This document shows, piece by piece, positions 15,840 to 20,564 of a stretch of 64,000 nt of DNA. The notes under the pieces are model-generated. The model saw only the letters and a program-made list of their open reading frames with translations. It made no database searches and was not told the origin of the DNA. The position numbers and the translations under genes were made by a program. How positions within the stretch are numbered: position 1 is the first letter of the stretch; every line of letters begins with the position of its first letter. Source of the DNA: Pelomyxa schiedti (taxonomy: Eukaryota; Protista; Evosea); the NCBI GenBank assembly GCA_020536535.1, contig JAHLWZ010000267.1:17153-81152 (forward strand), given 5' to 3'.

Positions 15840-16908
15840 CTAGCATAGTTTACAAGAGAAGATACACACCACAGCGCCGTCGTCATCATCCAATACACCA
15901 GAAGGGAACACTTGCACCAGCATGGCCATTTCTCCGCGGCAAATGGGGCACAGTGGGGTGCTGCTATTCTTGATTGATGTGAGGCAAGTCCTGCACCCAC
16001 ACTGGTGACCACAGGGAACAACCAGGAAATCAGCATTCTCAGCCAGGCACACAACGCACTTTGGTGACACAGTAGCATTGGCCGGTGCCTCCTCAACAGG
16101 AGTACTCAATGCGGTACTCGTACTAGTATCAGGCCTCGGCTCCGGAGCATGGGAGAGCAGCGTAGTGAGGTAGGCCAGAACCTGGTCAACCGGCTTATCG
16201 GCATCAACTACATCTATCTTCCTGAAGCAAGGCACAACGAAGCCGAACTGCATGTGGTATTCGGTCAGCTTCCTGCGTGCAGCCTCAGGGTTAGCATCAT
16301 AGTCCCTCCTGACCAGCCTGGACTTGTCCAAGTCGTCGGGAGGCGGGTAGAACCTCGAATGGTAGATGTTCCCGTTGCTGGGATCGATCCTGCGACCCGT
16401 CAGTCGCTCGACGCACACGTCGTCCGGCACGTCCAGCACGACGCACCTCTCGACGTCGAGCCCGGCGCACAGCCTCACGGCCTGCTGCCGGGTCACGGGG
16501 AAGCCGTCGAGCAGGATCGCGGCGGGGGGGGGTCGCGGGGCCGAGCCCGGGCGCGGGCGGCAGCGGTCGGCGATGGCGTCGACGATGAGGAGGTCGGGCA
16601 CGGCGACGCCCTGCGACACCTTGGTGGTGTCGTCGTGGCCGGCGAACATGTCGGGGTATTTCTGCGAAACGTCGTACGCCAGCCTCGACGTGCTGACGTG
16701 TTGCATCCTGCCTAGTGTTTGTTGTGTTTGCTTTTGTTTTTGGTGTTTTGTTTGTTTGTTTGTTTGGTTGCTCGTTTCCCCCCTCAAGGGCATCGTTGTG
16801 AACAACATACCCGAGAGTAACTTGTAGTCTTTTGCATAGTGTGCCCTTGCCTGACCCTGGTGGGCCCAGTACCACTATCAACCTCGTCTGTGGTGTGGTC
16901 GCAGCCAT
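15840..16908 (-). CDS. Adenylate-kinase-like domain fused to C-terminal C3HC4 RING
   Basis: Exon 1 MAATTPQTRLIVVLGPPGSGKGTLCKRL (P-loop). Then GVAVPD, ILLDGFPVTRQQA, ERLTGRRIDPSNGNIYH (LID), and RING CVVCLAENADFLVVPCGHQCGCRTC...CPICR. 3' end could include another exon. Confidence 0.85.
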
Positions 16909-17019: not shown

Positions 17020-18446
17020 ATGAATTCTTGCGGCAGAGACGATTTGGGGTTGAGTGTGCCGAGAGAGGAGGATGCATTGTTGGTGTTGGGAGACACTTTG
17101 TGTTGGTTGTTGCACGCTCTGCGGTGTCGCTGCTCCGGCGGCTGCCGCGCACTCGCCCCGGATCTGCCGCCCCTTCCTCCGTCCGTTTATGATCTCCTTC
17201 CGCCGAACGCGGACCCTGACGCGGCCAGCAGCAGCAGCAACAGCAACAGCAACGACGCGCTACGTCGCGAGATGCCGGCTGTTGTGCACCACGTTCTGTG
17301 CGTCCACGGTGTGACGCGTGAGGTCGCTTCTAGGCTGAAAATGTCTCCTGAGTGTGCCAAATTGAGACCACCAAGTTTGATGCGCGGCCATTTGATGCGT
17401 AGACAAACGCAATCAGAGTCACAATCACAATCACAATCACAATCTCAAGTTCAAGTGCAAATGCGAAATCCATATATACAAATAGAAGAAAAGACAGTTG
17501 ATACCAAATCAGGTGTTTCCCCACTACTTTTCTTGTTCGTGTGCCTTACCTGAGCTGATTTTCATTCTTTTGTAACCTAGTACTTTTGGAACCTTACAGC
17601 AGAAGATGGCTACTTCTGGTGGCTCAACTTATCAATATAATTGACCCAACGTTGCCACATCGACTTATGGAAGGTGGGTCTTTGTTATAGGATTTTATGC
17701 ATCTCAACCACTCATAGTTTCCGGTGGCTCAAGTTTAGTTGCCATCCAACACTCCCTCGTGATGCTAGGATCAAAATTGCCATCCAAAAACTCTTCAACA
17801 GTACGCATTCCCTTCTCTAGTTTCCCTTTGATATTTTTCTAGACCGAACACCTCACCTTTCTGATAGAGTTAGCTTCCTTTGCCCTATACTGTCTCAGTA
17901 GTCTCCACTCCCCACAGTCGTTACACCAAAGTTCCTTTGCACACACGGCCGTGCTAGATGCTGCGCTCGAATCCAGTTCGCTATTCTCAGTGTGTGGTCA
18001 GTGATCCATCCTCTCTTGTCTAACCTCCCTCGAAGACCGACTGCCAAATTCCCAAGACAAACAGACCCCCACCAACTCACATGAGTGACCAGTTTTCTCC
18101 TGTTGAATACAATCCGCTTCCCAGCCAACAACAGTACCACAGAACCATTTCCACCCTCATAAACACTGGGAGCACTTCATGCTACATACCAACGCTGAAA
18201 GAGAGTGCAAGGGCCATAGCCACGCAACAGGTTACTCAGCTGGGAGGCATAGAAGATGTGGCTCAGCTCATGGAGAAACACAACACCCTTGTCTGTGGAC
18301 TTGTAGACAAACTGGGATACCTTTCCAACCTGTGCAACCAATTGAGGTCCCAGCTCAGCATTCCCGTGGAGACTCCTCCTACCTCACAACTGTTTCAACA
18401 GCACCAACTTCTTGAAAGGCTTGCAGGCGGCAGAAATACTCTGTAG
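17020..18446 (+). CDS. Hypothetical multi-exon protein; weak resemblance to CH-like N-terminus of augmin subunit HAUS7/AUG7
   Basis: ORF 17020-17553 plus exons RRWLLLVAQLINIIDP and coiled-coil ORF 18081-18446 (LVDKLGYLSNLCNQLRSQL). Family assignment is inference only. Confidence 0.45.
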
Positions 18447-18661
18447 TGTTCCTCTGTAAGGCACCCAACCCCATATTCCAAAACCACACCTAACCTCCAT
18501 TCAGAGACAAAACGAAAACCCCTTGTTGTACAACAATAGAACCGAAAGCCACACAACTTTTCACCGGAGAAAGCTCCGCAAATATATTCCATGTTCTTTC
18601 AGAGAGGTTTTTTTTTCTCTGCTCTCTTCTAGACCTAAGCAAAAAGAAGGTTTTGGGGCTG

Positions 18662-18783
18662 TTCGCGACAATCACGTGTAAGAATCGCCTTAACCACTCG
18701 GCCACTGCGGCTTATGTAGTGTCGCCGCAGGTGGGATTCGAACCCACGGTTCCATAGGAAAATTGTTTTTTGAGATGTTTCGA
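18662..18783 (-). tRNA. Candidate circularly permuted tRNA-Ser(CGA): 3' half (18767/18783-18723), 11-nt spacer, 5' half (18711-18667/18662)
   Basis: Minus strand reads ACAAT-T-TTCC.TAT.GGAA-CC-GTGGG.TTCGAAT.CCCAC-CTGCGGC-G / ACACTACATAA / GCCGCAG-TG-GCCGAGTGGTTAAGGC-G-ATT[13 nt]GT-C... The acceptor stem is a perfect 7 bp (GCCGCAG/CTGCGGC), the discriminator is G, and there is a long variable arm. ATTGT/ACAAT form the anticodon stem. A T5 run follows at 18645-18641. Confidence 0.8.
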
Positions 18784-19114
18784 TGAAGTGATCATTCATC
18801 AGGGTGGCACTATTCTCTTGGAGGCCTCCATTTTGCAATGAACTTCACCAAGAGGGCACACCACAGCAACCCCGCAGAAAAAAACCACGGTGCTGGAGAG
18901 GAAAAAGGGAGAAACTTTTTGCTCGGTTAGGATTGTGGGACGGACTCAAAGTTTATCCTTGCAACAAATAGATTTCTGTAATACCCACACCTATGTATTC
19001 TTTATTTTATGGTGGCTAAAATAGCTGGAAAAGAGAAAGTGCAGCTGTGCTGGTGTCGTATGGCTGGAACCAGTCGTGCGGTCCCAATGTATCAGAGGCC
19101 TTCAGATAGTGCAT

Positions 19115-20564
19115 TTAGTGGAAGTTTGTGGGAACTAGATAGAGAGCACAAACCTCCCATAGATTTGAACTGGCTCGGATTCCAAATGTGCGAGTCACAG
19201 GCTTTGAACTACCAGCCTCAAGCCCCATTCTGATCATGGCTTGTTGGTAGTCTGTGTTGCACGAGAAAAGGGGAACATTCATAGCTTTGGCGCGGCACAG
19301 GGAGTGAGCAACAACGGCAGACGTAATGCGGTCCCATAATGCTGCCTTTTCCGTAGGATTCCGATCAGAAAGGAGCGGAAAGTCAATCTGAGGGCTCTCC
19401 AAGTATCTTCATTTGGATGAATGTGAGAACAGGTAGATAAGTAAAGAGAAGGGAAAAAGAAAGAAATTTAGAATACAGCGCAAGAGGTCCATTTACATCC
19501 CCCAAGTGCAATAACCTCATGTAGCATCTCCCAGCGGGATTGTGATGCCACTCTGGAATTTGAATGACAAGTACCTTATTTTTGGGATTTGTGAACTGTG
19601 CCAAGGCACACACAGGACTAAAGTCGAATCCATGACTAGGGCCACCAATTTTTGTAGCCCAAAGAAGCTCAGGGCCCTCCTCCTCCCAAGAAATCACTCC
19701 CTGGCCGAGTGAAGACCCATGATCCACTTTCAAGGAGGAAATCCAAGACTCAGTAAGCGGCCCAAGCGGAGCCAATTGTCTACGAGCGTGGCATAGAGGA
19801 GGCACAGCAACCTCCGCCGGGCCAGGCTTGGGGTAAATCCCACCATTCATCCTCCATTCCGCGAAGGCGCCGGCCAGAATTGCCCTCACACAGCAAAGGG
19901 CCGCCTCCGCGTTCCTCCTCACAACATCGGCCTTTCCCATAACTCTGCCAGAGCACGACGAATCGGATTCGGGTTCGGCGCGGCCGGTACCAGGGAATTC
20001 CCAGAAGCTAGGCAGGCCAAGGGCGTCGGGCCCTGAGCGGCTGCATTCCACAAGGCACCTGAGTGGGTGAATGACCTCACAGCGAGTGATGGAGTCCTCA
20101 AAGGCATCAAGGGGCACGGGGCCGTCCGCTGCCCTCCAGGATTCGTAAGTCCCATAATCCACTCCCACCTCGGCCGCGAGCAGCCTCGGCAGCACCGACG
20201 ACCTCACGAACGCAACCGCGCGCTCGACCTCGGCGGCGTCCCCGCTCGCCGACGCGCGGCGGATCTCGTCGGCTGCCGCGGCCGCCGACGCGGAGACGTT
20301 CGCTCGGCTGCGCACGTGCCTCTTGGTCGCGTTTTCGTTGCGCAGCATCGCGTGGTCGCCCCGCCGGTAGTCGAGGCGCGACGTCGGCGAGTCCCAGTGC
20401 GCGTACCACGCGCACGTCCGCCGCTCGGCCCCGACGTCGGTCGCCGTGTCGGCGCCGCTGTCGCACTGCCGCGCGAGGCTGCGCATCACCTCGGCGGCCC
20501 TGCCCGCGGACACCAACTTGGTGCCCTCCAGCACCGCCACCAACGGCGACACAGCTTCGTCCAT
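19115..20564 (-). CDS. Hypothetical protein with GC-rich N-terminal exon
   Basis: 415-aa ORF with AAAAAATG start at 20564 (MDEAVSPLV). An intron near 19420-19470 links to ORF 19115-19402. No recognised domain. Confidence 0.65.

Follow-up and report, generated by a model that had tools for sequence, protein, structure and literature searches.

Permuted genes for tRNA, where the 3′ part of the molecule is encoded ahead of the 5′ part, have been invoked in discussions of the algal ancestry of nucleomorphs and of an ancient link to bulge-helix-bulge (BHB) splicing. A stretch of DNA from the archamoeba Pelomyxa schiedti, in which the parts of a serine-type tRNA with anticodon CGA appear in this order, raises the question of whether the arrangement is genuine and, if it is, how a functional tRNA could be made from it. 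All positions below refer to the window, the whole 64-kb stretch that was analysed. It belongs to contig JAHLWZ010000267.1 of assembly GCA_020536535.1, and its open reading frames match NCBI proteins of P. schiedti at 97-100%, which bears out the original guess of an amoebozoan genome. Permuted tRNA genes have been reported from Cyanidioschyzon, Ostreococcus, Micromonas, the Bigelowiella nucleomorph and Thermofilum (PMC3978253), with Auxenochlorella the subject of the most recent report in the available part of the literature (PMC12633428). Those parts of the literature on permuted tRNA contain reports from red and green algae, a nucleomorph and Thermofilum and none from Amoebozoa, in agreement with the original prediction, which held that the case could be an undescribed one in an amoebozoan-like genome.

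The permuted body and its surroundings

Read along the minus strand, the locus presents tRNA positions 39-73, then an 11-nt linker, and then positions 1-29, an order that emerges both from direct reading of the sequence and from a layout scanner. The elements are met on that strand as follows.

18884-18878, minus strand: T7 run upstream, which would stop RNA polymerase III transcripts coming from farther upstream
18800-18782, minus strand: leader hairpin GATGAA-TGATCAC-TTCATC
18783-18778, minus strand: leader TCGAAA, the sole source of a U33-CGA-AA loop
18777-18767, minus strand: 11 nt, CATCTCAAAAA, between leader TCGAAA and A39
Upstream of ACAAT, minus strand: leader tail ending in ...GATGAATGATCACTTCATCGAAACATCTCAAAAA
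18766-18723, minus strand: 3′ part, tRNA positions 39-73, one contiguous block
18766-18762, minus strand: ACAAT, the 3′ strand of the anticodon stem, followed by T44
18760-18750, minus strand: variable arm TTCC/TAT/GGAA, with CC after it
18747-18731, minus strand: T-arm GTGGG TTCGAAT CCCAC
18730-18723, minus strand: acceptor 3′ strand CTGCGGC and discriminator G73
18722-18712, minus strand: 11-nt linker ACACTACATAA, from G73 to G1
18711-18683, minus strand: 5′ part GCCGCAG TG GCCGAGTGGTTAAGGC G ATT, positions 1-29, one contiguous block
Within 18711-18683, minus strand: U8 and G9, D-arm GCCG-AGTGGTTA-AGGC, G26, then A27 T28 T29
18682-18670, minus strand: 13-nt insert CTTACACGTGATT, splitting position 26/29 from what remains of the 5′ strand of the anticodon stem
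18669-18662, minus strand: GTC GCGAA, of which GTC supplies positions 30-32 (completing ATTGT and C32)
Downstream of GCGAA, minus strand: CAGCCCCAAAACCTTC TTTTT GC
18645-18641, minus strand: T5 run that may terminate transcription by RNA polymerase III, at a distance of 37 nt from position 29

The two strands of the acceptor stem, which flank the linker, pair at 7/7 positions, and the invariant nucleotides are in place (U8, A14, G15:C48, G18G19, A21, G26, T54-T55-C56 and G73). The class-II serine features are also present, namely G73, a AGTGGTTAA D-loop and a variable arm that consists of 1 nt, a 4-bp stem with a 3-nt loop, and 2 nt. At 11 nt, the linker falls inside the range of 1-74 nt given for known permuted tRNA genes (PMC3978253). 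The layout scanner requires a T-arm followed by a 7-nt strand and then, across a spacer no longer than 90 nt, the complement of that strand and a D-arm. It returned a single match in the real 64-kb window and none in 100 shuffled windows, which argues that the permuted arrangement is real and lies well past chance. We are close to certain that the locus is a true permuted arrangement of tRNA-Ser type. The predicted Ser-type order, with the 3′ part ahead of the 5′ part, and the predicted 11-nt spacer between the acceptor ends are thus both upheld, and the P. schiedti nuclear genome contains a locus of permuted tRNA-Ser(CGA) type that is new for Amoebozoa. The irregularities of the locus (the 13-nt insert and a G at position 33, both considered below) are confined to the anticodon arm, where they affect its loop and 5′ strand, or to the trailer, and none is found at the 73 positions of the body. 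This placement of the defects outside the body suggests to us that selection on the body is a better fit than uniform decay.

In its native form, the sequence drew no match from ARAGORN or from Rfam at gathering thresholds, as had been anticipated of standard scanners. With Rfam in permissive mode, the T-arm matched tmRNA (E 2e-4), and the unit made up of T-arm, acceptor and D-arm matched the bacterial RNA YrlA (RF02553) over model positions 30-81, at 17.2 bits against a gathering threshold of 69 and with an E value of 1.2. YrlA is the best whole-unit match in Rfam, and it resembles the locus in having a T-arm, a closed acceptor-like stem and a D-arm in permuted order. This would suit a reading of the locus as something other than a tRNA gene, be it a structured RNA of Y-RNA-like or another kind, a circularised pre-tRNA that was retro-copied, or an amplification chimera; the P. 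schiedti genome was derived from amplified single cells (PMC8887013). Explanations of this kind are improbable. The YrlA score is far under threshold, and the locus differs from YrlA in being eukaryotic, in possessing an anticodon-stem strand as well as a variable arm of Ser type, and in having no Ro-binding helix, that is, no long leader-trailer stem of that type. There is no poly(A), nor is there a CCA in the linker. DNA contigs from two runs on a single sample (~24x and ~4x) cover 17800-19800 or 18314-19045 and span the locus with 0 differences, which argues against a misassembly, the point for which a check of raw reads had been proposed with the prediction. These contigs are possibly the assembly's own data and so exclude a consensus error but not an amplification artefact. 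At 19045, ~260 nt from the tRNA locus, one DNA contig of run X2 departs from the reference, with 191 unmatched letters beyond; the departure may represent another haplotype, the edge of a repeat or a chimera from amplification.

A permuted layout could in principle be read as two ordinary, intron-containing genes in tandem. This candidate was rejected, as the exact D-arm and T-arm strings and the patterns for an A-box and a B-box each occur only once in 64 kb, which excludes it for introns of <18 kb, and protein genes lie within ~200 nt. The window search found no distal partner halves within 18-45 kb of the locus, as had been predicted for its vicinity, and ARAGORN, allowed introns of up to 3 kb, called no tRNA gene in the window. 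Six further P. schiedti loci (~90 kb, fetched via paralogous Sel1 proteins) contained no tRNA, ordinary or permuted, and gave 0 matches to the layout scanner; the 13-nt insert, the linker and the hairpin have no second copy in the P. schiedti DNA examined. Over ~140 kb of such DNA (the window and L064-L069), ARAGORN with introns found 0 ordinary tRNA genes where ~0.5 would be expected, a figure scaled from the density in Mastigamoeba, with its 219 tRNA genes per genome, and one so low that the zero count carries little information. The report of the Mastigamoeba balamuthi genome, from which this count comes, leaves permutation unmentioned (PMC8136499), and the P. schiedti genome paper is silent on tRNA (PMC8887013).

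The tRNA-like unit is intergenic, situated in a gap of ~420 nt between convergent, spliced and expressed protein genes.

17882-18572, plus strand: neighbouring gene, from RNA contigs, with GT..AG introns at 17990-18035 and 18456-18504
From 18990 upward, minus strand: neighbouring gene, from RNA contigs, with an intron at 19099-19152

The spliceosomal introns of these flanking genes are very short, at 46, 49 and 54 nt with GT..AG ends in the RNA contigs. Elsewhere in the window, the open reading frame at 15840-16808 on the minus strand encodes an adenylate-kinase domain together with a C-terminal RING finger (Pfam PF00406 and PF13920). The RNA contigs, which come from two single-cell runs, cover both neighbours and leave 18604-18938 uncovered; because single-cell RNA libraries seldom capture tRNA, the missing coverage is weak evidence and uninformative for a tRNA. 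The T7 and T5 runs together delimit a candidate transcription unit of ~240 nt. The background of T5 runs in the window is 0.0055 starts per nt per strand, which gives a ~28% chance of finding one within 60 nt and makes the downstream T5 run weak evidence for a terminator. There is a T4 run inside the gene and no T5, and the linker has none. The A and B boxes are in reversed order, and no TATA-like element is evident upstream of the locus.

The anticodon arm and known processing signals

The complete set of letters for a perfect anticodon arm is present within 122 nt, split in four pieces that run in the order positions 33-38, 11 nt, positions 39-73, linker, positions 1-29, 13 nt, positions 30-32. 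Within this set, ATTGT/ACAAT is the only 5/5 stem that is correctly positioned beside the variable arm; ATTCT/AGAAT (18816-18812) and GTGAT/ATCAC also pair at 5/5 and were rejected, being 27-51 nt off the variable arm. The claim that the two halves are mutually complementary therefore stands for the 7-bp acceptor and for the existence of a 5-bp anticodon stem, but not for a stem in place, since ATTGT is 13 nt away from G26. The register of the intervening insert is ambiguous, with GATT present at both 18686-18683 and 18673-18670.

If the trailer is read contiguously, GTC is followed by GCGAA, which puts a G at position 33 and CGAA at 34-37. With the last A of CATCTCAAAAA serving as position 38, the loop after ATTGT becomes C-G-CGA-A plus A38, hence G33. 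U33 is nearly invariant in elongator tRNAs, where it is required for the anticodon U-turn. The letters CGA occur twice (18782-18780 and 18665-18663), in neither case inside an intact contiguous loop. The model offered by the original prediction, a clean 82-nt cloverleaf from two halves, does not survive this examination. Its 82-mer maps to four blocks, with linear positions 1-29 at 18711-18683, 30-32 at 18669-18667, 33-38 at 18783-18778 and 39-82 at 18766-18723, so only 1-29 and 39-82 are contiguous blocks as proposed. The 13 nt at 18682-18670 and the 11 nt at 18777-18767 were omitted unannounced; the latter, CATCTCAAAAA, would be an intron at or near 37/38 under that model. To make it, three joins are required, and two of the exons measure only 3 nt and 6 nt. 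In essence, a cloverleaf made through one junction has either G33 plus the 13-nt insert or a mismatched CAA arm, and the perfect product takes three joins. ARAGORN called the rebuilt 82-mer tRNA-Ser(cga) and accepted the version with G33 as well.

Known permuted pre-tRNAs circularise where leader and trailer form a bulge-helix-bulge (PMC3978253). BHB scans, both strict and relaxed, took in all pairs of leader and trailer cuts and all registers of an intron, a scope that includes the three joins of the original model, five registers of the 13-nt insert and a junction at 31/32. Over all of these, no BHB or anticodon-intron pair giving a sensible arm was found, and no BHB able to excise the 13-nt insert precisely. 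An algal-type maturation signal at the junction is absent in all scans. The window at 37/38 has central pairs at 1/4, C32:A and no outer helix. For geometry controls, we used permuted Ser genes from a metagenome scan with the pattern 'T-loop, 18-48 nt, Ser D-arm'. At 37/38, control L019 has the anticodon stem, central pairs at 3/4 and a 9-bp outer helix, and control L017 has central pairs at 3/4 and a C32:G anticodon-intron pair; the 15-nt linker and GCT anticodon of L017 agree with the Micromonas pusilla entry (PMC3978253 Table 1). A central helix of 4/4 pairs, GTGA/TCAC, with cuts after 18670 and 18786, was rejected because the resulting arm is nonsensical. The strongest pairing between leader and trailer is an 8-bp helix (2 G-U) between 18795-18788 and trailer GTGATTGT at 18675-18668, whose leader side consists of the hairpin loop and one stem base and which does not match BHB geometry. 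The trailer at 18676-18662 contains the adjoining 6-nt palindromes CACGTG and TCGCGA; its fold is a small hairpin (CGTGA-TTG-TCGCG) that pairs the odd G33 with a T. Folding of the 180-nt precursor is unremarkable (z = -1.1).

These results bear on two readings that call for a single junction. An active type-II gene read contiguously would have its junction at 37/38 and a 13-nt intron near 26/27-29/30, and would yield a mature tRNA-Ser(CGA) with G33. It has the merit that one junction and one intron suffice, an architecture shared with the tRNA-Ser(TGA) of O. lucimarinus; ARAGORN takes its 82-mer as tRNA-Ser(cga), and the precursor hairpin is strengthened by G33. Against this must be set the near-invariance of U33 in elongator tRNAs and the absence of a BHB at both intron and junction, and we consider such a gene distinctly unlikely. 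Still less can be said for a single junction at 31/32 leading to a Ser-bodied tRNA with anticodon CAA, in which ...GGCG A TTCTT closes the 5′ part and CTCAAAA AACAA opens the 3′ part. This solution was returned by ARAGORN in intron mode on the rotated sequence and offers U33 and A37 with no extra excision. The cost is that the stem includes a C.C mismatch, that one base too many stands between D stem and anticodon stem, and that the variable-arm register is broken; again there is no BHB. By the identity rules of tRNAs, G73 and a Ser-type arm lead to serine charging, and serine would consequently land at UUG leucine codons. Moreover, the intron mode of ARAGORN gives differing anticodons for the near-identical permuted loci L009, L012, L026, L029 and L056, and it labels the family parsed by eye as Ser(GCT) 'Cys(gca)'. 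Given these inconsistent anticodons on control loci, its choice of CAA is arbitrary and was given no weight, and the CAA product is highly improbable.

An active gene or an inactivated copy

The explanation that we favour, with a probability of roughly 0.4, is an active gene that makes a canonical product through unusual processing. A single precursor would be transcribed from the stretch that the T7 run bounds upstream and the T5 run bounds at 18645-18641, and its ends would be cut and ligated to form a circle. The two small inserts of 13 nt and 11 nt would be taken out, and the linker ACACTACATAA would be excised by RNase P and tRNase Z, leaving an 82-nt tRNA with U33. The loop copy in the trailer, GCGAA with its G33, would on this account be discarded sequence. 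The cut signal would have to differ from the BHB motif of algal and archaeal permuted tRNAs, so the maturation of an active gene would constitute a new variant of the permuted-tRNA pathway.

Several observations argue for such a four-piece gene. The body is flawless and its layout is matched in 0/100 shuffled windows, the one well-placed 5/5 stem is ATTGT/ACAAT, and the 82-mer rebuilt with it is recognized by ARAGORN as tRNA-Ser(cga). The locus is intergenic, has the support of DNA from two runs and lacks partner halves in 64 kb, and the T5 run follows 37 nt downstream, with none internal. The leader keeps an intact U33-CGA-AA string, the defects leave the body positions untouched, and all features would be canonical if the product is made. 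The combination of permutation with an insert also has precedent, since tRNA-Ser(CGA) is permuted in all four of the prasinophytes tabulated and the tRNA-Ser(TGA) of O. lucimarinus is permuted at 37/38 and has an extra intron at 27/28 (PMC3978253 Table 1).

The points against a four-piece gene are of comparable variety. Neither a BHB nor an anticodon-intron pair is found at the three joins, at 37/38 or at 31/32, and the controls have central pairs at 3/4 compared with 1/4 here. Micro-exons of 3 nt and 6 nt are called for, and none so small appears in the review table (PMC3978253). A direct repeat of 4 nt (GATT) flanks the 13-nt insert, which resembles an insertion mutation, and the contiguous reading carries a near-forbidden base in G33. 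There is an internal T4 run, the A and B boxes are misordered, and no TATA-like element is evident upstream; that the RNA contigs skip the locus is a weak point. Finally, the similarity of leader and trailer is not significant, which leaves an origin by tandem duplication unproven: as proof of such a duplication it was rejected, a local alignment score of 15 being reached in 412/2000 shuffles.

The same irregularities can be accounted for by a recent loss of function. On this explanation, which we rate as a serious contender at somewhat less than an even chance, the locus was a type-II gene consisting of positions 38-76, linker and positions 1-37 until it was disabled by a 13-nt insertion and a change of U33 to G; no functional tRNA would be made, and the leader TCGAAA would be a chance match or an old remnant. 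The trailer sequence ATTGTC-G-CGAA retains 11/12 of the canonical stem and loop, which suggests that the 5′ part once reached position 37, as it does in every prasinophyte Ser(CGA) gene. The GATT direct repeat that bounds the insert is typical for an insertion event, G33 is present, no BHB or anticodon-intron pair is found at 37/38, and no expression is seen in the RNA contigs. What sits less well with inactivation is that both lesions lie in one segment of 11 nt and that none of the other 73 constrained positions is affected; if decay were random, a second lesion would land in that segment with a chance of ~13%. The intact TCGAAA of the leader would also require a separate chance event, with a probability of ~3-5% by rough estimate. 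Taking both sides into account, an active gene that matures unusually from four pieces and a copy that was recently inactivated are about equally probable, so that, as judged from its sequence, the locus is a candidate active gene or a dead copy whose function is unproven.

A more far-reaching extension of the four-piece gene would be that P. schiedti expresses tRNA-Ser(CGA) and many other tRNAs from permuted genes that have BHB-less junctions in or beside the anticodon stem, the arm being assembled by an undescribed cut-and-ligate rule, here from four pieces, one of them a 3-nt exon. This is speculative, and we think it rather unlikely. Pairing between leader and trailer, such as the 8-bp helix of 18795-18788 with 18675-18668, is a possible guide for the cuts.

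Were a verified archamoeba case to be established, it would mean either an independent origin of permutation or a far wider spread of permuted genes than has been believed, and it would imply that the tRNA sets of protists are under-annotated by standard scanners. As there is no BHB at the Pelomyxa locus, it would also suggest a second way of recognizing the ends that are to be joined.

Comparison with known permuted genes

The closest counterparts of the locus are the type-II Ser(CGA) genes of Ostreococcus, Micromonas and the Bigelowiella nucleomorph (Maruyama 2010; Soma 2014, PMC3978253 Table 1), in which the isoacceptor and the order of the parts are as here and the linkers are 5-28 nt long. 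In those genes and at the Pelomyxa locus alike, the 5′ side holds the stem and loop up to position 37 and CCA is not encoded. However, a BHB, strict or relaxed, is formed at the junction of the type-II genes and not at the Pelomyxa locus, which also has a 13-nt insert, a contiguous G33 and a non-photosynthetic amoebozoan host. The tRNA-Ser(TGA) gene of O. lucimarinus is alike in being permuted and in having the 5′ strand of its anticodon stem interrupted by an insert, and its linker of 13 nt is similar in length to the 11 nt found here. Its intron is 56 nt long with a relaxed BHB ('no H'), whereas the Pelomyxa insert is 13 nt long, has direct-repeat flanks and contains no recognizable motif. 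The highly disrupted tRNA genes of C. merolae, which combine permutation with an intron or hold up to three introns, share with the locus the division of one tRNA into several pieces and a downstream T-stretch, but they have a BHB at every junction and intron and a TATA-like element upstream (PMC3728597, PMC3978253). The cases in the review table include no exon as small as 3 nt, unlike the four-piece model of the Pelomyxa locus (PMC3978253).

The metagenome scan for a T-loop followed by a Ser D-arm gave 63 loci, mostly tandem tRNAs, with several that are truly permuted. The latter are of algal type or unrelated, and none is useful for covariation with the Pelomyxa locus. A family of permuted Ser-type units (L009, L012, L026, L029 and L056) has linkers tctttc or tcaga and A73. 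The trailer of these units contains a second T-loop-like string, GTTCGAATC, and inspection by eye did not find the anticodon 3′ strand; their architecture may be more complex. The AT-rich contigs L013, L032 (3-nt linker) and L037 (7-nt linker) carry permuted class-II-like units reminiscent of nucleomorphs, and in L013 and L032 an ordinary tRNA comes after the permuted unit.

A further permuted Ser-type unit, L060:60-215 (Ga0157369_10245678, GC 65%), has a 4-nt linker, a 7/7 acceptor and G73. It has no synteny with the window and is not related to it. The anticodon arm is ambiguous: its stem TACGA/TCGAA has one mismatch, the 5′ part supplies a CTTCAAC loop and the leader holds the string CTCGAAT. 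ARAGORN calls the unit SeC(tca). An 8-bp leader-trailer helix (73-80 with 192-199) and a T5 run are present. The unit adjoins a single-exon gene for TRM61, the tRNA m1A58 methyltransferase, and its source is probably a green alga.
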